A stretch of 63,679 nucleotides of DNA, counting the filler, from Octopus bimaculoides (lineage: Eukaryota), in assembly GCF_001194135.2 (NCBI RefSeq). It is 5 parts of 4 records of this genome, joined end to end, with 100 filler letters (N's around TTAATTAATTAA, not from the genome) between each part and the next. Parts side by side here need not be neighbours in the genome. Positions count along the whole stretch, not along the records: positions 1 to 18,163 come from NC_068984.1; 4 more parts are not named here. One strand, written 5' to 3'. A program made the position numbers and the translations under genes. Shown here piece by piece: positions 1 through 18,163 of this stretch. Positions within the stretch are counted from its first letter, which is position 1. Every line of letters starts with the position of its first letter. The notes beneath the pieces are model-generated. The model worked only from the letters and a program-made list of their open reading frames with translations. It searched no databases and was not told the origin of the DNA.

Positions 1-42
<42 letters not shown>

Positions 43-298
43 TGAAGTCTGCAGTATCAAAGAAGAAATATTCTATAATTATTTACACCTAGAGGAGGTT
101 TCAAACTCATTTGATCCCCAATAAGCTTCAAGTATCATAGTACTGGACATGTACATAATACCAAACTAGAATTAAATTAGAAACCTTTATTTATAAACTA
201 TTTATAAACATTTTTGATCATAACCATGCACTACTGTTTTTTAGCTTGTGTTAATTGTCCAGGTTTAGCTCCCATACCAGTATTTGAGTAAGTATCAA

Positions 299-590
299 GA
301 GGATGCATGGCCTAGTGGCTAGGGTGTTGGGCTCACAATCTTGCATCCGTGGTTTCAATTCCTACGTCAGGTGAAGCTGTGTATTCTTGAGTAAAATACT
401 TCATTTCACGTTGCTTTGTGATCATTTCGGCACTTGATGTGTAGTACACTGTTGACCTGTTCAGGTAACGCCGATTTGATGAAGGAAGTAAGGTAATATA
501 CAGCACACACTCTTGATTACTACAAATGTATCAATTTACCAGGTCATTTGGCTAAAGATAAAAACTCATACATTGTCTTCAACAGGAGAG
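299..590 (+). mobile_element. tRNA-derived SINE, degenerate
   Basis: A-box-like TGGCCTAGTGG (308-318) and B-box-like GGTTTCAATTCC (351-362), then a TTCTTGAGTAAAATACTT core like the copy at 1133. Confidence 0.7.
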
Positions 591-1132
591 TGCATCATAA
601 TGGCTAAGAAGTTCTACTCTAAAATAATTCAATTGAGTTTATATTGTTTAGCCCCAGGTCAGCCCAAACTGTGACTAGCTTTTCTTTTTCTTGATCAGGT
701 ATTACATTACTATAATTCCATGCTTTTGGATTTGAGAAAATAGTTACTGTAATAGTCATTAAGAATCAGCTATAATTTCCTTAGAAAATATAGTAAGCAA
801 CATTTTGATTATGAATTTGTGTTGCAAAAAGTCGATCAGAAACAAGAGCAACATCATGATCATCATTATTATTATAATTATTTACCATCCATATTCCATG
901 TTGGCATGGGTTGGACAGTTTGACAGGATCCTGTGGGCCCAAGGAATGGCTTAATGCTCTTCCTAATGGCTGACCACTTTACAACATGCATGGGGTTCCT
1001 GAGAGAGGCAGCTTCAAGCTAGGAAGTGATAGGTTAAAATATTAGAAAAGGTGCCAGAACAGCCAAATGGGAGGACAAATAACCTCTAATAACTGAAATT
1101 TGGATATACAAGGATGGACATGGAGTTTTATA

Positions 1133-1455
1133 AAGGTGCATGGCTCTGTGGTTAGAGTGTCAGGCTCACAATCATGAGGTAGTGAGTTCGATTCCTGGAC
1201 TGGGCTGTGTTGTGTTCTTGAGCAAGACACTTCATTTCATGTTACTCCAGTTCACTCAGCTGTAGAAATGAGTCGCGGCATCACTGGTGCCAAGCTGTAT
1301 TGGCCTTTACCTTTCCCTTGGATAACACTGGTGGCATGGAGAAGGGAGGCTGGTATGCATGGGCGACTGCTGGTCTTCCTTAAACAACCTTGCCTAGACT
1401 TGTGCCTTGGAAGGGAACTTTCTAGGCGAAATTTCATGACTGAAGGGAATTTTAC
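1133..1455 (+). mobile_element. tRNA-derived SINE with CORE-like central domain
   Basis: TGGCTCTGTGG A box, GAGTTCGATTCC B box, TTCTTGAGCAAGACACTT...CACTCAGCTGTAGAAATGAGT central segment. Confidence 0.75.
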
Positions 1456-4056
1456 ATGGAGTTTTAAGCTTTGGCTCAATGTTGCACTGTCTCTGTGATG
1501 TAGCATTACTGATTATGTTATATGTGGTGCATGAGTCTGTATGTTTGTACTCTTGTTTTGACATCATGTGATGGTTGTAAATGAACATCACCATCATACA
1601 GGCATTGTTGTTTATTTCCAGTTTTCTGTGAAAATTTCAGGATACTTAAGACTGTTTTTGGAAATATTATGTTACTTGGAAACAGGTGAGTTTGGCAACA
1701 GAAAAGGCATCCAACTGTAGAAAATACCTCAACAAATTGCATCTGCTCCCTGCAAGCATGGAAAAGTGGATGCTAAATCATGAAGAATGATGTCAATATA
1801 TGTGTGTGTGTATATGTGACAGGGTTCGTTTAGTTTCCATTTACCAAATGAACTTGCATAGTTTTGAAAAACCCAGAGCTTATTTTGCAGCAGGATTGAT
1901 ACCAAAATCACATAGTTACATATTTCTGAAGCAAACTTCTTAACCATACAGCCATGTTAAGTAGGCACATATATATGTGTGTGTGTGTGTGGCCCTTTAA
2001 AGACATGTGAAACATGAAACCCCTACGAGTAAGGGTTAGGAAGAAGAAAGACACTTAGCTGTAAAACAATGCTTCAATAATATATTCATGTAACTCATGC
2101 TAGCATGGAAAAACAGATGTAAACCAAATGAATGAGTGAGATTTGTTCAAGCTTTACCATTCCAGTGATCAATCAAAAAACAACAAAGTTGCAGCCCCAA
2201 ACCAATGAGAGAGTTCCTATATAATGACCTGCCTTGGTAGAAACGGCAGCCAAATTTCCCTCTCACTTCAAAATATAATCTTAGAAAAGTAAATACATTG
2301 GATAATATAATCCACTACTTGAAGAAACAAAGCGAGACTCTCACAACTGATCTGGTGTTATACAACAATGACAACAACAACATTAAAGAGTTAATTCAAT
2401 AATATCCATCCTAAATGCACAAAAACTGTTGGAGGCCAACAATAAAATTGTTGGTTATCTGAGTAGTATACTATTTCAAATTCTTAATTCATCAGGAAGA
2501 CAGTGTCATCTTTGGAAATAATTTATAGTATATTATATATTTTGTTGTTAGTATTTCTTATAAAACTGTGCTCATTTGTGTGATTTGAAAAGAAAAGAAC
2601 CAAGTTTGACAGGTATGAAAAATCTAATTTTCTAGTGAGCAATAAAGTTGTTTATCTAATTTCCTTGTATGACTTTTGCAAATATATTTCATTGTAATAC
2701 ATTTTTGTAAAATTTTTGTTTATTTTTTAGAAATATCAACTAGTTGTACTAAAAGCAATAAAACAAAACACTCCACCGACCGCTAAACATACAAAGAAAC
2801 AGCAAAAAAAAAAAAAAACAACTTAGCCACAACAAGAAAAATTATCAAAACAATTTCTGAGAAAATGGCATAAACAAAGTGCACTAACTAAAACAAGAAA
2901 ATATATGAATAGAAGATAGGAGGAAAAATGATAAGAAAAAAAAAAAAAAAGTTTTATAAAAGTTAGTTGTTGTGAATAAATAAATAAATAATACACAAGA
3001 AGTTTGTGACTAACCCTCAGGCTAAGATGAGCAAACATCAAATACAATGGTGATAGACAATATTAAAATGTGAGATGCATCACTGCCACAACAAAAGATA
3101 ATCAATAAAATAAATTTTAAAAGAAAACAATGTTATTTGTACCTTTAACAAAAAAGCCATTTGTTGTAAATAGATATGCCGAGTTAAATGTTTTGTTAGG
3201 TGATATTTTTTCTTAGATGCAAAATACATAAATTAAGCTAGCATATTTTCTATCAGTGACAGCCCTCACTCTGTACATCATCTATTTCCAAACTATCTAA
3301 ATCATTTAAAGAGTGCTTTGTGTCAATAGGGATGAATTTAGCTGAGATATTTTCTGTCAGTGGCAGATCTTAGGCTGCACATTAACTAATTCCAAACTAT
3401 TTAAAAGCTTTCTCCTTTTTTCCTAAGTGTACACTATTGAAACAGCGTTAATTTAAAACAACCATCCATATATTGAATTTAATATATATACACTGTTGAG
3501 AGGCATGTTGCTGTAGAATTTTTGTCTGAGAGAAAATTGCTTCTTAGATGTACTGTTTGAAAAACACAAAGTCATTCTGGCAACAGCTAGTGATAATACT
3601 AGGTATATTTTGGCCTTCTTGCACTTTGTCGATAATGTGTATTCACTAGTCATCTGCCACAAGGAAATATCTCTCCTCTGGTGCTTAGGAAGTAGTGAAT
3701 AGTACAATTACTGATATTACATATAGCTGCTGGGATGAATAAAACACAGCATATCAATTGATTTCTCCAGTCATGCTTTGTATCATAAATAGGGAAGAGA
3801 GGAGAGAGTAAAAGTGAGATGCAGAAAGAATGAATACAAGAAGTGCAGAAGAAGGTCATGATTTTCTAAAGATTTACCACCACCCTTCCATTTTTTTCGT
3901 ATGAAATTTTGCAGAGATATTTTTTCAATGGGGTTGATTGTGATCATGTTGACAAAATTTAGAAAATCAATAACATACATTTATTGCAAATTTGTGTTAC
4001 TTAATTATATTTTAGAGTATTAAATATACTTCCTTTGAAAAATAATTAGTATTACT

Positions 4057-4190
4057 AGGCTCAAGTATAGCTGTGTGGATAAGAGGTTTATTTCCCAACC
4101 ACATGGTTTTGGGTTCAGTCACACTATGCATCACCTTAGGGAAGTATCTCCTACTATAGCTCTAGATATCTCCTACTATAGCTCTAGCTG
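4057..4190 (+). mobile_element. SINE family 2 head fragment
   Basis: Matches the head of the full copy at 20393; ends in a duplicated ATCTCCTACTATAGCTCTAG. Confidence 0.65.
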
Positions 4191-4214
4191 TCTCTGCTAT
4201 AAGATGCAGTAGAT

Positions 4215-4694
4215 TTAGTTGAGCGCCTGAATAACAACCTGTAGTATCATTGAAATTGCCAAAATGAATGAAGAAGTGGTACTCCTGCGTCCCAGACTGG
4301 TCAACAGAAGGAGGCCAATCATTCCTCATGACAATGCTCAACCACACATTTCCCTAATGATGCTCTCGAAGTTGAGAGAACATGGCAACAAAGTTCTTCC
4401 CCACCCAGCTTATTCCCCAGACCTTTCTCTGACCGACTACCACTTTTTCAAGCACTGTAATGGTTTCCTGCGAGAGAAGTTCAAAAATCAAACAGATACT
4501 GAATGTTTGTTCAAAGGGTTCATCAGCTCCAGAACTCCATATTTTTATGTTACGAGAATAAAGAAACTTGTAAATCATTGGCAAAAATGTGTTGATTGTA
4601 ATGGTACTTACTTTGATGAATAAAATTTCTGCATTGTTGAAATATATTGTGATGAATTTCATGTTTCAAAACATTGTTTACTTTTTACTCAGCT

Positions 4695-4697
<3 letters not shown>
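4215..4697 (+). mobile_element. mariner transposon remnant: transposase C-terminus and right TIR
   Basis: ORF 4264-4623 has HDNAQPH, HPAYSPDLSLTDY and WQKCVDCNGTYFD mariner motifs; degenerate TIR followed by TA repeat. Confidence 0.9.
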
Positions 4698-4739
<42 letters not shown>

Positions 4740-4759
4740 TGCACATATATTATTTTCCA

Positions 4760-5292
4760 TCAACAAATTCCACTCAAGGCACTGGTCAAGCCAAAGCTAT
4801 AAAACAAAATAACTTGCTCAGTGTGTCACTTAGAAGGAACCAACCTGGAATCACATACTTGTGAAGAAAACCTCTTAACTACATTGTTGTTGTTGTTGTT
4901 GTTGGCACTCCGTCGCTTATGACGTCGAGGGTTTCCAGTTGATCAACGGAACAGCCTGCTCGTGAAATTAACGTGCAAGTGGCTGAGCACTCCACAGACA
5001 CGTGTACCCTTAACATAGTTCTCGGGGATATTCAGTGTGATACAGTGTGACAAGGCTGACCCTTTGAATTACAGACACAACAGAAACAGGAAGTAAGAGA
5101 AAGTTGTGGTGAAAGAATACAGCAAGGTTCGCCACCATCCCCTGCCGGAGTATCGTGGAGCTTTTAGGTGTCTTCGCTCAATAAACACTCACAACGCCCA
5201 GTCTGGGAATTGAAACCGCGATCCTATGACCGCGAGTCCGCTGCCCTAACCACTGGGCCATTGCGCCTCCACTCTTAACCACATAGCCATGC
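4760..5292 (-). mobile_element. Older family 2 SINE head, interrupted by a younger SINE
   Basis: Reverse-complement match to family 2 head at 4760-4884, continuing at 5272-5292. Confidence 0.65.
4885..5271 (-). mobile_element. Young full-length tRNA-derived SINE (family 3) with (CAA)n tail and 13-bp TSD
   Basis: Minus-strand head TGGAGGCGCAATGGCCCAGTGGTTAGGG...GGTTTCAATTCC; TSD CTCTTAACTACAT (4872-4884) / CTCTTAACCACAT (5272-5284). Confidence 0.9.
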
Positions 5293-5836
5293 TTTAACTA
5301 ATACCCCACACAAATTCAAATGATAGGCGTAAAGTATACAACACTAAAAATAGCTTAATCAAACATGAACGTGTGGTAAAGTAACAAAGAAAATAAAAAC
5401 CACAAAAATTATTACAAAGTAGCAGGAAATAATAGAAGTACAGGCTTAACATTTCTTTTACAGTTTTTCTTACAAAAGTAAAACACAAAACGCGTACAGT
5501 TTGCAAATGATCTTGCTATCAAGTTGTGTTTCCATTTGACTGAATGCAAGATAGACATATTGGCATGTGTCATTTAAGATAGAGAGATCTAGATGTTTTT
5601 TGCTTTTTTTAATTTATTTCTTAATGTATTTTAATCTCCATAAATAAATAAATGAAATAAAACATACACTGAATGCAATATTCCAACATGGCTTTAGCCA
5701 TGATGGCTAATACAAGATAAAGAATAAAGAACTGCTTTAATATGAATCTGACATCTTTTTTTTAACCAAGTCTATATACTGAAATGCATGCATGAAATAA
5801 TGGCCCAAACTTCTTGTTCTTGTTCTTCTTATTGTT

Positions 5837-6430
5837 AAGGTGGTGAGCTGGCAGATTCATTAGCATGCCAGGTAAAGTGCTTAGCAGTATTTCGTCCATC
5901 TTTACGTTCTGAGTTCAAATTCTGCCAAGGTTGACTTTGCTTTTCATCCTTTTGGGGGTCGATAAATCAAGTACCAGTGAAACACTAGTATCAATCTAAT
6001 TGACTGGTTCCCTCCCCTAAAATTTCAGGCCTTGTGCCTTTAGTAGAAAGAATTACTATTATTATTGTTATTAAGTTGGCGAACTGGCAGAATCATTAGT
6101 ACACCAGATGAAACGCTTAGCAGTGTTTTATGTTTTTACACTCTGAATTCAAATTCCAGCAAAGTCAACTTTTCCTTTCCTCCTTCTGGGGTTGAAGACA
6201 TAAATACTAATTATGCACTGCGGTTTATGTAATTTACAATGCTCTCCTCCAAATTTCAGGCCTTGTGCCCATAGTAGGAAGGACTATTATTCTTATTAAA
6301 GCGTGAAGTCTACAGAATTGTTATAGAATTGCAAAAATGCTTTGCAGCCTTTCTTTTGGGTCTTTACTTTTTGAGTTCACATCCTACTGGGGTTAACTCC
6401 GCCTTTCATATTTCTGGGGTAGACAAAATA
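5837..6430 (+). mobile_element. Three tandem, CpG-decayed family 1 SINE copies
   Basis: Repeated AAGGTGGTGAGCTGGCAGA...GAGTTCAAATTC...CTTTCATCCTT...GGGGT units at ~5837, ~6073 and ~6297. Confidence 0.85.
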
Positions 6431-6604
6431 CTTACAATTTTTTTTTTTTTTTACCAAAAAGGCTTCTCCCATGGTTTTTAATTTAAAAAAGAAAATGGCC
6501 AAAATCAGTCCAGATAATCCCAGATGGTCAAGCTTTTAATAATTGCTTTCTTTCAGTACTTTTAGCAACTGTTACACACCTAGTTAATAAGCAGCTTTTT
6601 CCAT

Positions 6605-6880
6605 TATAATATAGTTAACCGAAAATGTTATTACTTTTTTGTGGCAGTCACATGTAATTTCAACAATATTTTGTTATTTGTAGAAAGTCAAACAACTGTT
6701 AAAAGTTCACTCATCAGTCTTTGCTATTGTTAATTTTATTTGAAATCTCTCTTCAACATGATTTATTAAATATAATAAATGTCTTAACATTCGATTTTCT
6801 ATCTCCGATAACTTTGTTCCTGTTTTTACATATAACTGAATATTTATTTTTTAATATAGTAGGCATAAATAATAATAATA
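6605..6880 (+). repeat. Outer inverted-repeat arm A (partner 9575-9865)
   Basis: Direct reverse-complement alignment, e.g. TTATTTGAAATCTCTCTTCAACATGATTTATTAAATATAATAAATGTCTTAA. Confidence 0.9.
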
Positions 6881-6915
6881 ATAATAATAATAATGATAAT
6901 AATAATAATAATAAT

Positions 6916-7123
6916 TTCTACTATAAGCACAAGGCCTGAAATTTTGAGGGAGGGGGCCAGTCGATTAGATCGACCCCAGTATGCAACTGGTACTTAATTT
7001 ATTGACCCTGAAAGGAGGAAAGGCAAAGCAACCACGGTGGAATTTGAACTCAGAATGTAAAGACATGAAATACCGCTAAGCATTTCGCCCGGCATGCGAA
7101 TGACTTTGTCAGCTCACCGCGTT
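6916..7123 (-). mobile_element. Family 1 SINE with (ATT)n tail
   Basis: Reverse complement of the family 1 head, core and tail; (AAT)n at 6868-6914. Confidence 0.85.
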
Positions 7124-7129
7124 ATAATA

Positions 7130-8460
7130 ATAATATTGTTTTGCAAATATCTTGCACATGCAAGTGCTACCAGTTGAGAACTCTGCATATCAGAAGCCAG
7201 CAAGTGTATGGGGTCATCAGGAGAGAATGTGTGCCGTTTTGGGGCCTACCTCTCGATGGCATCAATGTGCACTGGCCCCTCCTCACTGATATGAGGCCCT
7301 GCTTGCTAGATCAACTGGTTATTAAATAAAGCTCAATATTCTTCTAGCCATCACCCATCGTCTCTTTTTAACCAAATCCAATGGTTAGCCTTTTCCACTA
7401 TAGTTTGGATATCGGTCATGGTGGTATTTACTTTACAATGAGTTAGGCCTAATGATAACAACAGTCGTCTCACACTGTGTCCAACAAACCCTCTACATCC
7501 GACTTAGATTGGAAAATGCTCTGCTTTACAGCCTGCATCTTCACATCCTTTGAGGAGGTTTACATAATGGTCAATCTTTCGAGCCCGAGCGTCATCCATG
7601 TTATCTTCATGAGGAACCGTTAACTTGACTAGATTCACAACTTTCTTTCCTTCACACCACATTAAAATGTCCGCTTTTTTTGTAAATGGGAAGGGAAAGA
7701 GTCCTTGGCACCCTGGTAAATCTGCAGTCACCGCCCAATAACAGTTCCCCTTTTCATCGCTCACAGGAAGTTTCTTGTTCTTTTTGAAATGGATCCGCTG
7801 TCCTGAGTGCATGGAGGTAATGAAATCTCTAGTTGGTACTTTCAACGGGTTTTTTCTCTGTTGTTGAGATCAATTTGGTTTCAAGAAACCTTAAGGACCA
7901 GGTTGTGTCTCCATGTATACCTGTTCAATGCTAAGGAACAGTTGGAAAGAATATGTTTCAGTGTTCCGACCTTTGTGCGTTTGCTTATATCATTCTCTGA
8001 GACGTTCCATCTTACTAGATTTGCAGGTGATGGCAAGACATCATAGGATAAACAAATCAGAAAACTTAGCCGAGATGTGGTCCACCTCCATATCTCATCC
8101 CAGCTTTTTTTTCTCTCAACAACATGTTCTTCCCATCTCATCATCTGTCCTTCTTGAATACATTGGATCAAATGAAGCTCTTTTCTCTTTGCTTCCTTCA
8201 TTTTGACGCTGTTGCTAACAACAGATTTGCGCTCACTCCGCATCATATTTGCAAACGGTCTGAACTGATCTGCGCCAAAACCAAGTCCCTTCCGATGATT
8301 TTGTGTTGCACCCACCATATCTCGGTGTGTAAGAGAAGATAAGATGTCATCAGTCTCTGTTTCTGCTTTCCACTTCCGAGCTGTTTTCATGTCTGGTGGA
8401 TTACACCTGATTTCCATGTCCTTCGACTCTCTCAGCATCATCACCAATTGTACCATTCCC
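7130..8460 (-). mobile_element. 5'-truncated, frameshifted R2-group (RLE-type, HERO-like) non-LTR retrotransposon
   Basis: ORFs 7881-8456 and 7504-7845: KTARKWKAE, RLSFLICLSYDVLPSPANL, HILSNC...RYTWRHNLVL zinc knuckle, ADIL...VKLTVPHED degenerate PD-(D/E)xK nuclease, continuing VGCRGFV...NHWIWLKR. Confidence 0.85.
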
Positions 8461-8804
8461 AGTTATTATGTACATGCTTTGTCTTGGTGTTAAAGATGGG
8501 CTATAGCAAATATTCTGCTCAACACTACGAATTTGCTTGTCAGTTGTTTGATCTTCACCAATTAAGCATGTCCCTTGGTGGCTGGCGATATGTGCATCTC
8601 TGATCATGAAATAGTGGGGAAGCATCATAGCCATGTGTGGAGAGGAATTCTTTGGGTTTTGAATAATTCATCTCTGGAAGCATGAGCATTTCATTCAACA
8701 TCCTTAAGCAACCCTTATTCAGGGACCTTTTAAACAGGATGGGCTACTTGACCTGAAAAAAATTCTAACTGGGCCCCACCTGCAAGGTCATGCACTGTTT
8801 ATCT
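8461..8804 (+). repeat. Inner inverted-repeat arm B (partner 9209-9564)
   Basis: Reverse-complement alignment, e.g. CCCTTATTCAGGGACCTTTTAAACAGGATGGGCTACTTGACCTGAA. Confidence 0.9.
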
Positions 8805-8828
8805 ATTATTATTATTATTATTATTATT

Positions 8829-9063
8829 GCAGCAAGCTGGCAGAATCATTAACACATTGGACAAAATGTCTAGTGGTATTTTATCAGTCTTCACATTCTG
8901 AGTTCAAACGCTACCAGGATGGACTTTGCCTTCCATCCTAGTAGAGTTGATAAAATAAGTACCAATTGAGCACCAAGGTAGATCTAAGTGACTTACTTTC
9001 TCCCCTGAAATTGTTTGTCTTGTGCCAAAATTTGAAATCATTATTTATTATTATTATTATTAT
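8829..9063 (+). mobile_element. Family 1 SINE, degenerate
   Basis: GCAAGCTGGCAGAATCATTA head, GAGTTCAAA B box, (ATT)n tail. Confidence 0.8.
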
Positions 9064-9064
9064 G

Positions 9065-9564
9065 TTAGAGAGCAGCGCATGTCATCAAAGTGACATTGGA
9101 GTACAAATATATGGAGCCCAATATAGCCATCATGACAACTTGTCTGATAAGGGTACACAAGGCACATGCATCACAACCATATATGTGCGAATTGGTAATC
9201 TTATATCAAAATAAACAGCACATGACCTTGCAGATGGGGCCCAGTTAGAATTTTCTTCAGGTCAAGTAGCCCATCCTGTTTAAAAGGTCCCTGAATAAGG
9301 GCTGTTTAGGGATGTTGAATGAAAGACTCATGTTTCCAGAGATGAAGTATTCAAACCCCAAAGAATTCAAGAATTCTTCTCCACACATGGCTATGATACT
9401 TCCCCTCTATTTCTGCTCATGATCAGAGATGTACATATTGCTAACCACCAAGGGACATGCTCAACTGGTTAAGATCAAACAACTGACAAACAAATCTGTG
9501 GTGTCAAGCAGAATATTTGCAGTAGCCCATCTTTTACATCAACACAAAACTTATACATGATAAC
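9065..9564 (-). repeat. Interspersed repeat containing arm B'
   Basis: 9209-9564 is the reverse complement of 8461-8804. Confidence 0.8.
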
Positions 9565-9574
9565 ACTTCCATAT

Positions 9575-9865
9575 TATTATTATTATCATCATTTACGCCT
9601 ACTATAATAAAAAATAAAAATTCAGTTATATGTAAAAGAGGAACAAAGTCGTTGAACATATTTGTTGGAGACAGAAAACAGAATTTTAAGACATTTATTA
9701 TATTTAATAAATCATGTTGAAGAGAAATTTCAAATAAAATTAACAATAGCGAAGACTGATGAGTGAACTTTTAACAGTTGTTTAACTTTCTACAAATAAC
9801 AAAATATTCTTGAAATTACATGCGACTGCCACAAAAGAGTAGACACATTTCAGTTACATATAAGA
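9575..9865 (-). repeat. Outer inverted-repeat arm A'
   Basis: Reverse complement of 6605-6880; directly abuts arm B'. Confidence 0.9.
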
Positions 9866-9917
9866 ATGATGAAATATATATAAAGTTCAGAGAGCTTTTA
9901 CTTCTTTTGGCAACAGA

Positions 9918-9956
<39 letters not shown>

Positions 9957-9964
9957 CCTCTCTG

Positions 9965-10306
9965 AGTGAAAGGTGGAGTGTATCATGTATGTGTATGAAT
10001 TACAATGCTACATGGTTGCAAGACATAAGCCCTGAATGCAGAGGAGATGTAAAGATTAGGAAGGAATGAAGCTGGTATGCTCTGCTGGATGTGCAATGTC
10101 AGTGTACATGTGCAACAGAGTGCTAGTGCATTGAGAATACAGTTAAGCATAACTGGAATTAGATGCAGTGTACAAGAGAGAAGACTGAGACTGGTCTGGT
10201 TTTGTTATGTGATGCATGTGAATAAGGACAGTTGCATAAAAAGGTGTTGATCACTTAAAGTGGATGGAAGTTGTGGAGTAGATCCAGGAAGACATGGGAT
10301 GAAGTG
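9965..10306 (+). mobile_element. RTE-clade LINE 3' fragment (pseudogenised RT C-terminus)
   Basis: With stops, translates as RLGRNEAGMLCWMCNVSV...GIRCSVQERRLR...RKTWDEV, typical of the RTE C-terminus. Confidence 0.8.
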
Positions 10307-10739
10307 TGCTGCCCTCCATCACCATCTCTTCACTCACCAGCAATTATTCTCAATACTCACACATATCTATTGCAACCCGTATTCCTGAGCCTCTCCTATA
10401 TTTCACTCCATCATTTGTTAGTCACCTCACCCTGCCCACTCACCCATCCCAAGTCTCTATATTGCCTCACCTATTATCATCCCCAATGTCCCTCAAGGGC
10501 ATGTCCCGACACATCAATGCCATCATCTCTTCCACTATCACCCCCTTCAACTTACTCTCCAACTCATCTTTGTTTTCCAACTGGGGTATCCATGCATCTA
10601 CTCTACAGCAAGACACTTATATCTGTTCCCTTCTATACCTTAAATTTTTCAACTGGCACAAAGCCTCACCTCCTCAATACTGCTCCTTGCCTCCCAGTTG
10701 AAGGGTTCTTGTCTCACAGGGTACTTCCTGATCCTGTGG

Positions 10740-10895
10740 GTGCTGTGCCACATAAAAAGCACTGGCGCTGGTGCCAGATGAAAAGCATGGTTGATGGTGC
10801 TACATAAAAATTACAGGTGATGGTTCTGCATCAAAAAGCATTTGTGATGCTTCCACATAACACACACTGGTGTGGGTGCCATGTAAAAATGCACC
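10740..10895 (+). repeat. Degenerate ~27-30 bp tandem array
   Basis: About six units resembling GGTGCCACATAAAAAGCACT. Confidence 0.7.
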
Positions 10896-10954
10896 CAGTA
10901 CTCTCTATAAAGTGGTTGGTGTTAAGAATATGGTGGGTGGGGCATTGTTTCTCA

Positions 10955-11230
10955 TTCAAACTGTTCTAGTCTTTGGAATGTCATCCTGAAGGAAGAACAC
11001 CTTTCGTCTTGAAACCAAAGGTGGTCATTTTTCTTCTAGTGCTGACTTAAGCAACTCAAGCTGCTCGTAGTAGATCTCTTTTGTTATGTAGTTTGGGTTT
11101 AAAAGTTCGAAGTGGACTAAACCTTTCCTATCCCACCAAACAGATAACAACACTGTACATGGTGCTGTTATTTGGTTATCCAATTCATTACACTGTCCAT
11201 GTTTGTTCATTTGAATTCCCCCATGACATT
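10955..11230 (-). mobile_element. mariner transposase internal fragment
   Basis: VLLSVWWDRKGLVHFELL...YYEQLELLKSALEEK, then RRKVFFLQDD. Confidence 0.85.
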
Positions 11231-11490
11231 CAAAAATGAACGCAAAATAAGTAACTATAGTTTAAAATTTAATAACATGCCAGTGTTTCTCCTTTCCCTA
11301 CCCACTGTCTTCGACTCATGACATTTTTATAGACAACCCATTTCTCATCACCAGTCACTATTCGGTCTAAAAGTGGTTCATTTTTTGAGCTGTACAGATC
11401 TTCCAGGATGAGGCTCACTTTCTAGTTTCTGGCTTGAACTAAATTAAAAACCTTCTGTCATAATTTCCTTTTCAACTTCTGTTCTAACCA

Positions 11491-11750
11491 CCAGCTTAAT
11501 AACAAAATAATTTTACTAAATTCTTCATTATTTTCTAAATTACTTCAAATAAATTCAGTGTACTTAAACAAAAATATGGTAACAAAGAGGCCTAAATGGT
11601 CTAAATTAAAACTTTCCATCAAAATTTCTGTTAACTAACATTCAAAATACCAGATTAATAATGTTATTTTATTAAATTCTTAATTATTTTCAAAATTAAT
11701 TGAAACAAACGCTGTGTATTTCAATAGAAATATGGCAACAAAGGTGTTAA
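11491..11750 (+). repeat. ~100 bp AT-rich direct repeat, period ~159 bp
   Basis: TTTTACTAAATTCTTCATTATTTTC...AATATGGTAACAAAG occurs at 11491-11595 and, diverged, at 11650-11750. Confidence 0.7.
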
Positions 11751-12027
11751 TTTTGAAAGATCACACTGGTTTTGTCATATAGTTTATGAAATTGCTATCA
11801 GTAATATATTTACTCTGAAAATGAAAATTTTCATTCACCAGCTTTACAAAGCATTCTTTATTCTTGAAGGTATATTCTAATGATATCTGAAAATACCTCT
11901 TCTTTTTCTCTGATTCTGTCACTTCATGCTAGTTCCCACTCATTTCTTCCTACAGCCATAACTCTTTGGAATTTCCTTCTTGCTAACATTTTTCCATGCA
12001 GGAAAATAAATTTAATCTAATTAATTC

Positions 12028-12650
12028 CAGCTTGACAAAGCTTTGTGCACATCATCAAATTTACTATTTGTTGTTTGACCATGAGAACAGCAGTTCTTAC
12101 AGGACTATGAACAACGGTTCTTTGATAAAGTGTCTGTGACAGTGCAGAAATATGTGTCCTACAGTCTAATTATGTCATTTATAGCCCGGTGGTATGTTTT
12201 CATGCACATTATCTATAAGGAGAATTTCTCTCTCAAGACAGTTTCTGCAGAGAAGGTTTTTCTATATTTGAGTGTACACATATGATATAAATATAATTGT
12301 ACACACCTATATTTCACCCATTGCAGTTTTCTGTGTTCCTAATCAATTTTAGCATGACAAAGCTTTGAACACATCAGCAAATATACAATTTTCTATTTAA
12401 ATAGAAGAACTATTTGTAGTTCTTAGTGGGCTGTATGCAATGGATTCAGAGTCTGTAGCTTAGGAGGAATAACAATGCAAAAATACTATATCCTATAGTC
12501 TGATGATGTCATTTGTAGTCCAGTGTTGTCATTTCACACTCACATAGTCTATAAGGAGAATTTCTCTCTTGAGACAGTTTCCACAGTGAAGGTTTTTTCC
12601 ATGTTTGAATGTACATGAATGTATTAGATACAACAATACACACTGTATAT
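12028..12650. repeat. Old ~322 bp tandem duplication
   Basis: TGACAAAGCTTTG..CACATCA at ~12033 and ~12355; TCTATAAGGAGAATTTCTCTCT..AGACAGTTTC at ~12212 and ~12549. Confidence 0.85.
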
Positions 12651-14789
12651 TACTGTATATATATATATATATATATATTGTGTTTTTCAGTCAAGACAGC
12701 TTAGTGCACCTGTCCTTCTATGAATGATAACCATGTAACCATGTGGAAAATGAAGGTGAAAATAATCCACTTTTATAGAATAAGTAACAATTTAAACTAG
12801 TTCCATAATTTAGTAACTGAATAACAAATTAGTTGCTCCGATGGAAATTGGCAGAAGACGATTAAGTATATGGATGTTGTACTACTATTACTACTACTAC
12901 TACTACTACTACTACTACAGCATCAACTTCTTCACCTAAAATCCATATTCTATGCTGGTATGAGTTAGATAGTTTACTTGTACTTATGGTGGCATTCACC
13001 TGGGGTGCATTGAACCAGCCCTGGTCAATGAATTCACCACAACCCTTGTGAATGCTGACCACACCTGACAGTTGGCCACAGTTGAGGTTGTAATGGATAC
13101 CCACTCTCGGTTCCACTGAGCATGGACACAGTAGCCATAGTCCTCATTTGCTGCTAAAGTGTAGGATTCATGTTCAATGTTTCAGTGGGAATACAAGTTC
13201 ACATATTTCCCCAGTCGCATGCATATACAGTTTGGCATAGTGTGCTCTATAGCAGCTCATCTTGCTGTCAACTTCACTGATCAAGTTACCACCAGATGTA
13301 TTGGAGCAGATGTAGCTGGGGTTTGAACTGAGTTCTAGAGACGTGCCTTAACAAAAACTAAGGGGTGCCTCACTCTTAGTGGTCTTCCAGCATGCCAGGC
13401 ACCAACCTGGAATTTCTGAGGGCCCATGCTATTGCTAGATAGTTGCTGAACCTACACTAAGTTCATTCGTCCTTTTGATATGTCTTGTTTTTAGTCTTGT
13501 TGTGTTTCTAGCAATCCTCCTCACTAGGCAAGCCTAGTGATGGTGCAGGTTTAGCTGCCAATGACCTGACCATGCAACAGATTGTACTGGAATCTGTATT
13601 GTCAGTTGCACTCATGAGAGACTTCACACGTGACCTGACAAAGAGTTAGATCGTTTGACAGGATCCAACAACTCTGAGGACTGCATTCTGCTCTAATGTT
13701 TGCTTTGATATGGTTCCTACGGTTAGAAAAGGTACCCTTCTTAACACCAACTATTCTTCAGTGTTTACTGGATGCATTTCTCATGGCACCAGCTCTAGTG
13801 AGGCCACCATGCAGCTCGCAGGACTAAGATCTCCTTCAACTGAGATGAGTCACAAAAGCAAGGAAGTTGGTTTCATGCTAAGAGATAAAGGGCTAAAGTA
13901 TGAGAAAATAGATCAGAAGAAAATAAAGTTCTCTCTGTAGAAGAGCTACATAGCTACTTATGCTATAGAAAAGTGGGTGGAAATAACCAGGGTGGAGACG
14001 TAAAGAAACAAAGATAGTGGTGATGAAGTGTCAGCTTGGGGCCTTAAGTTACAAAGTGAACAGAAGTGAGTGTGGTAAGAAGAATTTGGAATGAAGGTGG
14101 GTAAATGCTTCAAGAGTGTATAGGGAGAATGAAGGATGGGGGTGATTATAATGAAGAATAGATTTTGAGGGATGGAAGGTAGGGAAGAATGGGTTTGAAG
14201 GGTGGGCCGACAATGCAGGAAAAAAAGGCAAGGATGAAGAGCAGCAAAATAACAATAATGGTATAGTAATGGACAGGAGAAGGATAACAGAAAGAGAGAT
14301 ATAAGATGTGTCGAGGGTGATCAATATAAAACATGGGTGGAGAGGACAAAATGAAGAATGATGTATGGATAACTACTGAAATGCTTCTGGGTAGTAAGAA
14401 AGATAAATGGAGAAACTATGAAAGTAGCAAAAGGTATTAACAAAACAATTATAGACTGTTACAATAGAAAATATCATTACACAACAGATTGATGCAATAT
14501 GTCAAGCTGAAAGAAATACTTTAATTATGAACCAACAATGCCAGGTTTGAAGAAGCAATTAATTTGAACTGATGACATTAACATCATCAGTTAATGTCTA
14601 CTTTTCCTTGCTTGCATGGGTCAGATAGAGTTTTTTTAAGGCAAATTTCCAATAGCTGTATGACATCTCTATGGCCAATCATTACTTGTTACAAGCAACA
14701 TAATATTTCATCATCATCAGACGTGTTGTTCACAGAAGACTAGAAACAAGCAACATTGCTTGTATGATGATGCATGTGGTATGGCAAGG

Positions 14790-14840
<51 letters not shown>

Positions 14841-14892
14841 TATATTTATATACACATACACTCATACACACACACAATGGATTTATATATGT

Positions 14893-15055
14893 GATGGGTT
14901 TCTTTCAGTTTCTGTCTATCAAATCCACTCACAAGGCTTTGGTTGGCCTGGGACTTTAGTAGAAGATACTTGCCCTAGGTGCCACACAGTGGGACTGAAC
15001 TGAAGACCACCTGATTGAAAAGCAAAGATTTTTAACCACACAGCCATGCCAGCAC
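14893..15055 (-). mobile_element. Family 2 SINE head, degenerate
   Basis: Reverse complement of the head at 20393. Confidence 0.75.
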
Positions 15056-15474
15056 TGACAACAGTACATTGCTAATTATTTATTAATACTAAAGAAGGAG
15101 TAAGTAAAGTAAACACCAGGATAATTTGAACTGGAAACATAGTCACCAAACTAGATGTTAAAATATGTCTGATCATAAAAATCCAAAATGATGAATTAGT
15201 GCAGGGAGTAACTATGTAGCCACTTGGTCTTCATAATACAGCAGCCCACTCTCTTTCAAATAAAATTCTAGAAAGAGATTGATGCATTAGATAATGCAAT
15301 CTTAGGTGCACGGGCACTGTTACAATGGAAAAAGAGGGATGGTCATAGCTGGAATATCATTGACCATAGTTCTCCTCACTTAGTCCTGACCTGGGGCTAC
15401 TCAGTAAGAACAACATTTGCATATACTTCACAATTCCTTCATCTTGATGCTATTGATGTTGATTATGATGACTG

Positions 15475-15953
15475 TTTCAAGTTATGGCACAAAGCCAGCA
15501 ATTTTGAAGGAGGTGCAAGTCAATTCATTGACAGTCGTACATGACTGGTACTTTATTTTATTTTTTTGACCCTGAAAAGATGAAAAGCAAAGTTGACCTC
15601 AGTGGGATTAGAACTCAGTATGTGATGAACCAGAAGAAATGCCACAAAACACTTTGTCAAACATACTAACAATGATGCTAGCTCACCACCTTGTTGAGGA
15701 CAATAATCTTTTCTACTAACGGCACAAGGCCTGAAATTTAGGTGGGGAGAGGGGCAGTTGATTACTTCGATACCAATGTTCAACTGGTACCTATTTTATC
15801 GACCCCAGTGCTTAACTTATATTTATTTAATTGACCCTGAAAGGATGAAAGGCAAAGTTGACCCCAGCAGAATTTGAACTCAGAACATAAAGGCAGATAA
15901 AATGTTGCTAAGCATTTTATCCTGTGTGCTAACGATCCTGCCAGCTCACCACC
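15475..15953 (-). mobile_element. Tandem family 1 SINE copies, CpG-decayed
   Basis: Reverse-complement units ending at ~15690 and ~15953. Confidence 0.8.
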
Positions 15954-16282
15954 AGTTGATGATAATAATAATGCCATCAATAATAATAATGCATCAACTG
16001 CCAGCTCAGTTTATGATAATAATGATTGGAAAAGTTTTAATACAAAAGTTAGAAGCAAAAAATGTTTACACTATAACATGTAGGATACAGAGGCATTCAT
16101 GCTTTTCTAACAGTGGCTGAAGTGTATTAATAGGATCCTCTAAATAGTCAAATGAACTGCCAGAAATAAGAGTTATATGTTCCTCATATCAAACACTAGC
16201 ATCTTAAGAAAGGAAGGCTACATTGCATAATATATTCTTAGACATACTAAAAAAGAAAACAGATGGTCTTGTCTGAAACACC

Positions 16283-16591
16283 GGATCTATTTTAAAACGG
16301 GGGTGCCAGTATTTTCTTAACGAAACACTAACGAAACACTTTGAAACTTGGGACACTGGTAGAATGTGTCATATAAAACATCTTTTACTCTTAGTCTTAA
16401 CAAAAAAAAGGAATTCGCAAGTTATTCCATGTAAAAGTTGTCGTATTTCTGTAATTTCAACCAATCACTGACGTCTATTCAGCTGAATAGAGTTTACTGC
16501 TGGGCGGTCATAAAAATGTTATTCCCTGTGACATATTTCATCCGGTTTAATCGTAATTTATACGCATATATTGTTTATATAATAAATTATG
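16283..16591 (+). mobile_element. Unclassified DNA-transposon-like repeat end (related to 59910-60240)
   Basis: Shares GGATCTA..T.AAAACGGGGG..CCAGT and TAATTTCAACCAATCACTGAC...TATTCAGCTG with the reverse complement of 60030-60240. Confidence 0.55.
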
Positions 16592-17531
16592 NNNNNNNNN
16601 NNNNNNNNNNNNNNNNNNNNNNNNNNNNNNNNNNNNNNNNNNNNNNNNNNNNNNNNNNNNNNNNNNNNNNNNNNNNNNNNNNNNNNNNNNNNNNNNNNNN
16701 NNNNNNNNNNNNNNNNNNNNNNNNNNNNNNNNNNNNNNNNNNNNNNNNNNNNNNNNNNNNNNNNNNNNNNNNNNNNNNNNNNNNNNNNNNNNNNNNNNNN
16801 NNNNNNNNNNNNNNNNNNNNNNNNNNNNNNNNNNNNNNNNNNNNNNNNNNNNNNNNNNNNNNNNNNNNNNNNNNNNNNNNNNNNNNNNNNNNNNNNNNNN
16901 NNNNNNNNNNNNNNNNNNNNNNNNNNNNNNNNNNNNNNNNNNNNNNNNNNNNNNNNNNNNNNNNNNNNNNNNNNNNNNNNNNNNNNNNNNNNNNNNNNNN
17001 NNNNNNNNNNNNNNNNNNNNNNNNNNNNNNNNNNNNNNNNNNNNNNNNNNNNNNNNNNNNNNNNNNNNNNNNNNNNNNNNNNNNNNNNNNNNNNNNNNNN
17101 NNNNNNNNNNNNNNNNNNNNNNNNNNNNNNNNNNNNNNNNNNNNNNNNNNNNNNNNNNNNNNNNNNNNNNNNNNNNNNNNNNNNNNNNNNNNNNNNNNNN
17201 NNNNNNNNNNNNNNNNNNNNNNNNNNNNNNNNNNNNNNNNNNNNNNNNNNNNNNNNNNNNNNNNNNNNNNNNNNNNNNNNNNNNNNNNNNNNNNNNNNNN
17301 NNNNNNNNNNNNNNNNNNNNNNNNNNNNNNNNNNNNNNNNNNNNNNNNNNNNNNNNNNNNNNNNNNNNNNNNNNNNNNNNNNNNNNNNNNNNNNNNNNNN
17401 NNNNNNNNNNNNNNNNNNNNNNNNNNNNNNNNNNNNNNNNNNNNNNNNNNNNNNNNNNNNNNNNNNNNNNNNNNNNNNNNNNNNNNNNNNNNNNNNNNNN
17501 NNNNNNNNNNNNNNNNNNNNNNNNNNNNNNN

Positions 17532-17655
17532 GCTATACCTGGCGTACCTTGGGTCGGGGCAAGCTTCAAGGATCGGATACCGCAAGACGGACTCGCAGTC
17601 GAGGAAAGGAAAACCGAGGTAAGGCGATTACATCTACTCGTATGCACACACCACA
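17532..17655 (+). mobile_element. Probable 3' part of the 5' LTR of a Ty3/Gypsy element
   Basis: Ends in CA immediately before a tRNA-related 12-mer and 35 nt before the gag ATG; 5' part lost in the gap. Confidence 0.55.
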
Positions 17656-17671
17656 AGCTATTTCGGCACCA
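17656..17671 (+). promoter_or_regulatory. Putative non-canonical primer-binding site related to tRNA-Phe
   Basis: AGCTATTTCGGC is the exact reverse complement of metazoan tRNA-Phe(GAA) nt 1-12 (GCCGAAATAGCT, recalled); TTTCGGCACCA equals its nt 66-76. Confidence 0.65.
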
Positions 17672-17690
17672 CGTGCAGAAATTCGCCTCG

Positions 17691-18163
17691 ATGGCAGCCA
17701 CCAAGATTAGGATCGCCAGCGATGTGATCAGGCCTTTTAATGGCGAAGGAGATGTGATGGCTTGGATACGAAAAATTAGGCTCGTTGCCAAGCTGCAAGG
17801 AATAAGCGATGTGGCGAGTCTCATGGCTCTGTACTTGGAAGGGAGCGCTCTGACCTTCTACCTAAAAATGGACGAGGAAGAAAGATTGAGTGCAGAGAAC
17901 GTCGAATGGAGGCTGAGAGAGGCATATACGGAGAGCAAGTACGCTGCCTTCGTAAAACTAGGAACGATTAGATGGGGGGGAGAACAGGTGGATGAATACG
18001 CGGCGGAAGTGCGAAGACTGGCCACGCTGGCTGGGTTTACGGGAGAAGGCCTGGACAGAGCGGCGCGGCTGGCGTTTGTAAATGGATTCTCCGACGACGT
18101 AGGGATCCGATTACAGCAGTTGCCTGGCGGGAGGAAGATGGCGCTCAGCGAGCTAGTAGCGCA
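17691..18163 (+). CDS. gag: Ty3/Gypsy Gag N-terminal (capsid) region, open until the gap
   Basis: MAATKIRIASDVIRPFNGEGDVMAWIRKIRLVAKLQ...ALYLEGSAL...EQVDEYAAEVRRLATLAG...AFVNGF; uninterrupted and GC-rich. Confidence 0.8.

Follow-up and report, generated by a model that had tools for sequence, protein, structure and literature searches.

A putative primer-binding site complementary to the 5′ end of tRNA-Phe in a compact LTR retroelement of Octopus bimaculoides and its relatives

We analyzed a 63,679-nt stretch of Octopus bimaculoides DNA (hereafter the window: five parts of four records of NCBI RefSeq assembly GCF_001194135.2, joined end to end with filler letters) which contains, at the end of its first part (positions 1 to 18,163, from NC_068984.1), the start of a long terminal repeat (LTR) retroelement whose putative primer-binding site (PBS) has the sequence complementary to a host tRNA's 5′ end. 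Just 632 nt of the element (17532-18163) lie in the window, between a 940-N assembly gap and the edge of the piece. The locus is laid out as follows.

16592-17531, no strand: assembly gap of 940 N, covering most of the element's 5′ LTR (from the sequence)
17532-17655, plus strand: final 124 nt of the presumed 5′ LTR (its U5 end), with the terminus ...CACCACA; boundary placed from relatives, in which LTRs ending ...ACA are followed by the same motif
17656-17667, plus strand: putative PBS, AGCTATTTCGGC, exact complement of nt 1-12 of tRNA-Phe(GAA) (GCCGAAATAGCT)
17668-17671, plus strand: ACCA, 3′ of the site; equal to the tRNA discriminator base plus CCA in the window copy only, and missing from the relatives
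17668-17690, plus strand: short untranslated leader between the site and gag (from the sequence)
17691-18163, plus strand: N-terminus of Gag, 157 codons beginning with the ATG at 17691 and truncated by the piece edge (from the open reading frame (ORF) and its homologues)

A preliminary description of this locus, made from the sequence alone, had given exactly these coordinates for the CACCACA end (17655), the 12-mer, the ACCA and the ATG, and had stated that a canonical TGG-type PBS is lacking; indeed, there is none between 17656 and the gag ATG. The LTR-terminal stretch, GCACACACCACA, has its last base at 17655, an end that is placed by comparison with relatives because the gap leaves just 124 nt of sequence upstream. 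There is a single occurrence of the 12-mer in the window, where 0.03 would be expected at ≤1 mismatch. ARAGORN found no tRNA genes in the window, and an Rfam scan of 17532-18163 returned nothing meaningful. The window's own 157-codon ORF has no Pfam match; we found 55 homologues of this Gag (about 50% identity, 230-270 aa), many of which contain a CCHC zinc knuckle.

The identity of the pairing partner can be read from published oligonucleotides, namely a forward primer for human Phe(GAA) tRNA, printed as GCCGAAATAGCTCAGTTGGGAG (PMC10505166), and a 5′ probe for Drosophila tRNA-Phe, printed as GCTCTCCCAACTGAGCTATTTCGGC (PMC7038984). Judged by these two sequences, the 12-mer is exactly complementary to nt 1-12 of tRNA-Phe, which are conserved from insects to humans, as the preliminary description had stated; molluscan tRNA-Phe presumably has the same 5′ sequence. 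The tRNA regions facing the site are the 5′ strand of the acceptor stem, U8, A9 and the first three bases of the D stem. Complementarity has sharp limits: toward the LTR it stops exactly at tRNA nt 12, and toward gag exactly at nt 1. Predicted energies of the 12-bp duplexes range from -18.7 to -23.5 kcal/mol, and when the site is co-folded with the whole tRNA, the predicted minimum-energy structure contains exactly the duplex between the site and nt 1-12.

The preliminary description had also proposed that the site mimics the 3′ acceptor strand of the tRNA, as 17661-17671 are identical to tRNA nt 66-76. The identity is real; however, 7 of its 11 bases are automatic, since the acceptor stem is self-complementary and TTTCGGC therefore equals tRNA nt 66-72, so that ACCA is the sole extra information. 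The four nucleotides that follow GGC are ACCA in the window, CATT in Argonauta and GAGG in Aplysia, all three with the same 12-mer, and ACTG, CTAA, AATT, CTTG, AAGG, TCTT and TCCC in other families. We therefore rejected acceptor-strand mimicry as a family feature, because ACCA is missing from every relative; it is a peculiarity of the window copy that is compatible with chance.

As the LTR of the window copy is hidden, the position of the site relative to the LTR was read in related elements (loci are referred to by L numbers). The most informative of these, L003, is a complete 4,170-bp element with 237-nt LTRs that are 100% identical and have TG...CA ends, a flanking 5-bp duplication (ACTGC), and in between gag, protease, reverse transcriptase (RT), RNase H and integrase (IN) sequences and a G-run ahead of the 3′ LTR. 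The 5′ LTR is followed without a spacer by the site, AGCTATCCCGGC, from position 9972 on. The same layout was found in Argonauta hians (L138; duplication TCAGT), Oratosquilla oratoria (L139; CAGAA) and Aplysia californica (L140; GATCA). The LTRs of all four start with TG, and they end in CA in three and in CAAG in L138. In these four loci, as in Petrolisthes manimaculis (L149), no base separates the LTR from the motif, in agreement with the LTR end that the preliminary description had placed directly before the 12-mer. Assemblies available for the named hosts are GCA_054771915.1 (Argonauta), GCA_000002075.2 (Aplysia), GCA_046742065.1 (Oratosquilla) and GCA_034508575.1 (Petrolisthes). The 12-mer and LTR pairs are also present in L150-L153 (LTR ends and duplications were read in L003 and L138-L140 only), and the LTR pairs of L149-L153 are 99-100% identical; the pairs of Argonauta and Petrolisthes, like that of L003, show 100% identity and mark young copies. 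The same motif follows ...ACA in L004-L017, which are circularly collapsed contigs from marine metagenomes and Logan assemblies, and 11 of the 12 bases of the site are kept at the LTR end in an old copy, L002. Altogether, both LTRs are present in 10 of 13 elements, and a 5-bp duplication was read in four.

Two observations on these junctions deserve mention. Both Argonauta LTRs (L138:4969-4987 and 9025-9036) end ...GATCAAG rather than ...CA, after which the complete AGCTATTTCGGC follows; the extra AG is directly abutted by the TCAGT duplication, and imprecise primer cleavage or end processing are possible causes. The contigs L005-L008 (about 4.2-4.4 kb) are circular permutations of the element, in the order pol end, one LTR, gag. 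Such permutations are expected when identical LTRs collapse in assembly, and they are also compatible with one-LTR circles.

The relatives are unusually compact, with full copies of about 4.2-4.5 kb including the LTRs; their Gag measures about 250 aa and their Pol about 950 aa. Their Pfam matches comprise zf-CCHC, aspartyl protease, RVT_1, RVT_3/RNase_H, Integrase_Zn/H2C2 and rve, and G-runs lie directly 5′ of the 3′ LTRs. Every site starts with AGCTAT directly after the LTR, and the leaders between site and gag are 20-45 nt long, with no conserved TGG-type site in them. A search for pol homologues returned 455 at E≤1e-10, mostly from marine samples; a viral-contig collection searched for further family members yielded no relatives. 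The element family is widespread in molluscs and crustaceans.

The site itself is far better conserved than its surroundings. AGCTAT-NNN-GGC is present in 13 elements (the window, 11 loci, and L002 at 11 of 12 positions) representing at least nine gag/pol families. Among 11 family representatives, pairwise identity is 91% within the 12-mer, 39% in the 30 nt upstream and 26% in the 30 nt downstream; the conservation listing has 12 contexts, these 11 representatives plus one variant sibling. Variation is confined to the three bases that face tRNA acceptor-stem positions 4-6. These read TTC, the complement of the canonical GCCGAAATAGCT, in the window, Argonauta hians, Aplysia californica and L002. 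A CTA variant is found in Oratosquilla oratoria, Petrolisthes manimaculis and five further families, including plankton contigs; the Gag proteins of these five families share about 55-65% identity. An exact partner for the CTA site exists in eukaryote-type tRNA-Phe(GAA) genes that start with GCCTAGATAGCT, of which there are two, L129 (confirmed by ARAGORN) and L146. Apart from its acceptor stem, the tRNA body of L129 is presumably that of insect tRNA-Phe. A third eukaryotic acceptor variant of tRNA-Phe, GCCGAG, is represented by L023. The three variable site bases follow the host, with TTC in molluscs and CTA in crustaceans.

These tRNA genes came from a metagenome scan for GCCKRGATAGCTCAGT, in which L023 and L129 were the only eukaryote-type tRNA-Phe, and from a scan of IMG/VR, which added L146. 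The tRNAs found in the scan for such 5′ ends were mostly tRNA-Phe(GAA), and the metagenome matches to GCCKRGATAGCTCAGT were mostly bacterial or plastid tRNA-Phe or tRNA-Thr and a termite tRNA-derived short interspersed element (SINE). Among L019-L137, many of them termite-gut metagenome contigs, most matches to GCCGGGATAGCT belong to a tRNA-derived SINE-like repeat that starts with GCCGGGATAGCTCAGTCGGTATAGCGACTCGCTACGGGCTGG and are not tRNA genes.

A further change of the site was found within a single family. In sample ERZ25072293, three copies (L151-L153) have CTA and their sibling L001, which is 96.8-97.0% identical to them over 2.4 kb, has CCG. The two adjacent bases that distinguish the sites are the sole differences from 18 nt upstream to 60 nt downstream. 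With this change, the L001 site reads AGCTATCCGGGC and is exactly complementary to the 5′ end of tRNA-Lys3 (UUU), GCCCGGATAGCT. A tRNA-Lys primer on a CTA site would pair at 10 of 12 positions, with a predicted energy of -15.4 kcal/mol. Retroviruses and ETn are known both to copy primer sequence into the PBS and to switch primers (PMC7472051), and L001 appears to be a natural switch of the same kind, from tRNA-Phe to tRNA-Lys(UUU). The preliminary description had pointed to fixation of the 12-mer at the LTR boundary and to covariation with other tRNA 5′ ends as informative comparisons, and both speak in its favor: the 12-mer is kept across a large family, varying only opposite tRNA positions 4-6, and the CTA and CCG sites have partners in the GCCTAGATAGCT tRNA-Phe and in tRNA-Lys(UUU), respectively.

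From the observed position of the site, its complementarity, conservation and covariation, and the lack of a self-primer in the elements, we infer the steps of cleavage, priming and primer copying in the following model. Minus-strand synthesis is probably primed by a cleaved 12-nt 5′ fragment of tRNA-Phe, and the site is probably recopied in each cycle. The element RNA would open tRNA-Phe and pair with its 5′ strand (nt 1-12). Because a primer must have its 3′-OH opposite the site's first base, where LTR and PBS meet, it would have to end at tRNA nt 12, and a cut between nt 12 and 13 would therefore be needed. This cut may be the work of the element's RNase H, analogous to the cleavage by Tf1 of its own RNA, or of a host nuclease; a host enzyme has been stated to be the cutter for Ty5 (PMC5371799). 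The 12-nt fragment would then prime minus-strand strong-stop DNA, and plus-strand strong-stop synthesis would copy the primer up to its natural 5′ end, G1, so that the site would be regenerated from host tRNA every cycle. Copying to the natural 5′ end would account for the fixed 12-nt length and for complementarity stopping at nt 1. Likewise, recopying from the primer would explain why sites vary with the tRNA-Phe acceptor stem of the host and why copies matching the 5′ end of a different tRNA occasionally arise.

Several points weigh against this model. The window copy is single and its LTR is lost in the gap, and the support comes from sequence comparison. The known classes of 5′ tRNA-derived fragments (tRF-5) are longer than 12 nt, and we know of no enzyme that cuts tRNA after nt 12. 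The tRNA-Phe genes starting with GCCTAGATAGCT are known from L129 and L146 and not from the named hosts; in the host element loci there is no tRNA-Phe gene, the only tRNA gene being a tRNA-Val in L139. Finally, no partner among eukaryotic tRNAs was found for the CCC variant of L003 (GCCGGGATAGCT).

The strongest competing explanation is that the 12-mer binds intact tRNA-Phe, or serves as a cis element in packaging, dimerization or translation, and that priming occurs by another route. Conservation alone is unable to separate such functions from a primer site, and no primer has been observed. Against this, the motif sits at the first base after the LTR, the geometry that defines a PBS, and the 20-45 nt leaders hold no conserved TGG-type site that could serve instead. 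Moreover, the variation follows tRNA acceptor stems, with one copy switched to the tRNA-Lys 5′ end, which is expected if a primer is copied into the site and unexpected for a protein-binding or dimerization signal. On balance we regard this explanation as unlikely.

Self-priming of the Tf1/sushi type, in which the element's own transcript would carry GCCNNNATAGCT at its 5′ end and fold back on the site, fares considerably worse. The primer length (12 nt, compared with 11 nt in Tf1) and the absence of a TGG site are both reminiscent of Tf1, and in the window the LTR that could encode such a 5′ end is hidden by the gap. However, no complement of an element's own site was found at ≤2 mismatches in any LTR or element, in LTR-to-LTR spans at four loci and six upstream regions. 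The best complements in these four full copies and six upstream regions have 3-5 mismatches, and the three-mismatch level is that of chance (about 1.7 matches at ≤3 mismatches are expected per 4.4 kb). Self-priming would also leave unexplained why families with unalignable LTRs have identical sites. We therefore rejected it as highly improbable; the preliminary description had named an LTR transcript starting with the complement of the site as the result that would speak against tRNA-derived priming, and the comparison gives no support for one. The last alternative, a chance match or a reversed element whose minus strand (TGGTGCCGAAA) offers a canonical 11-nt site for the tRNA-Phe 3′ end, is conceivable in the window through the ACCA at 17668-17671 and was rejected as having practically no likelihood, because Gag lies on the plus strand directly downstream, the LTRs of the relatives lie on the plus-strand side of the site, and the minus-strand TGG does not exist in relatives with the same 12-mer, which lack ACCA.

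The preliminary description had labeled the element Gypsy, an assignment that we could not establish. In all loci examined (L003, L014, L138-L153) pol has the order protease, RT, DUF7047, RNase H (RVT_3), IN, with Pfam DUF7047 between RT and RNase H. The protease-RT-RNase H-IN order does not discriminate Ty3/gypsy, because it is common to BEL/Pao elements and retroviruses. The Gypsy-type Pfam families RT_RNaseH and RT_RNaseH_2 have no matches in the family's pol, even at E 0.1; a neighboring Gypsy pol in L151 does match them. The family's pol likewise has no Pfam matches to the Pao-type peptidase, DUF1759 or DUF5641, all of which are matched by a neighboring BEL/Pao element in L150. By hhalign, the RT-to-RNase H region aligns with this BEL/Pao pol over 432 columns (E 9e-6), and the IN region aligns with Gypsy IN (E 9.5e-10). 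A profile search of solved structures matched retroviral integrases (4.6e-15, with that of the mouse mammary tumor virus (MMTV) type best) and the RT of HIV-2 (1e-4), and no Ty3 chains were among the 60 best matches listed; the structure matches are retroviral rather than Ty3. We leave the element unclassified.

Some features of the surroundings were recorded as well. In Oratosquilla, the 5′ LTR starts at 4363, and some 195 bp upstream of it is a tRNA-Val(CAC) gene (L139:4095-4167, minus strand); this single case could hint at insertion near RNA polymerase III genes. The L003 element interrupts an ORF (L003:9115-9750 and 13857-14258) that includes a YqaJ-type exonuclease domain in its downstream part; the location of the region between 276-nt inverted repeats (8398-8673 and 15397-15672) points to another mobile element as the insertion target. 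Elsewhere in the window, reading of translations revealed a C-terminal fragment of a mariner-like transposase (4264-4623, plus strand) and two adjacent ORFs (7504-8456, minus strand), possibly parts of a different mobile element. Nested inverted repeats (6623-6889 with 9572-9850, and 8462-8802 with 9211-9564) are 85-93% complementary, with arms of 150-270 nt, and enclose about 3 kb. SINE-like repeats occupy 5816-6131, 8805-8939 and 15528-15953, and there are AT/AC microsatellites too.

The priming modes reviewed for LTR retroelements are the tRNA 3′ end, half-tRNAs from the anticodon arm, and self-priming (PMC5371799), and the family shares features with each. In Tf1/Tf2, Tj1 and the sushi group, the primer is the 5′ end of the element's own mRNA (PMC4600332). 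As in these elements, a TGG-type site is lacking and a 5′-terminal RNA of just 11-12 nt would serve as primer; as in Tf1 and sushi, its release would require an endonucleolytic cut at the end of an RNA-RNA duplex, and plus-strand strong-stop synthesis could reach its natural 5′ end. Unlike in Tf1 and sushi, the partner sequence is a host tRNA 5′ end acting in trans, and the LTR contains no such complement. Copia and Ty5 use a half-tRNA produced by internal cleavage rather than a native CCA 3′ end (PMC5371799), and the primer proposed here would similarly be a 5′-derived fragment of a host tRNA. In contrast, copia and Ty5 rely on tRNA-iMet cut in the anticodon stem-loop, with a site that pairs with the anticodon-arm region, whereas the site of this family pairs with nt 1-12 of tRNA-Phe (tRNA-Lys(UUU) in L001) and the model calls for a cut in the D stem and a 12-nt primer. 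With canonical 3′-end priming, including that of IAP, which uses tRNA-Phe, the family has in common a host tRNA, a site directly after U5 that holds host tRNA sequence, and occasional primer switching (PMC7472051). It differs in using the opposite end of the tRNA, in lacking TGG and in having a site of the same sense as the tRNA 3′ strand.

We found no description of a retroelement with a tRNA 5′-end site in the open literature (subscription journals and Repbase reports lay outside this scope); in the searchable literature the site 12-mers occur only as antisense tRNA probes. A large survey of PBSs tests only 12 nt at tRNA 3′ ends (PMC13524379), and because the site matches a tRNA 5′ end, a survey of this design would score the family, with its 455 pol homologues, as lacking a PBS. 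The chances seem to us evenly balanced that this is an undescribed mode beside 3′-end, half-tRNA and self-priming, in which a compact LTR lineage of marine invertebrates primes from the 5′ 12 nt of tRNA-Phe cut in the D stem (in the manner of Tf1, yet in trans), with a site that is rewritten each cycle, tracks the host tRNA-Phe and sometimes switches to tRNA-Lys(UUU). A site for the tRNA 5′ terminus would constitute a fourth priming mode of LTR retroelements. If true, it would pose the enzymological question of which enzyme cleaves a tRNA 3′ of nt 12, and 5′ tRNA fragments would be tied to the replication of retroelements and not to their silencing alone.
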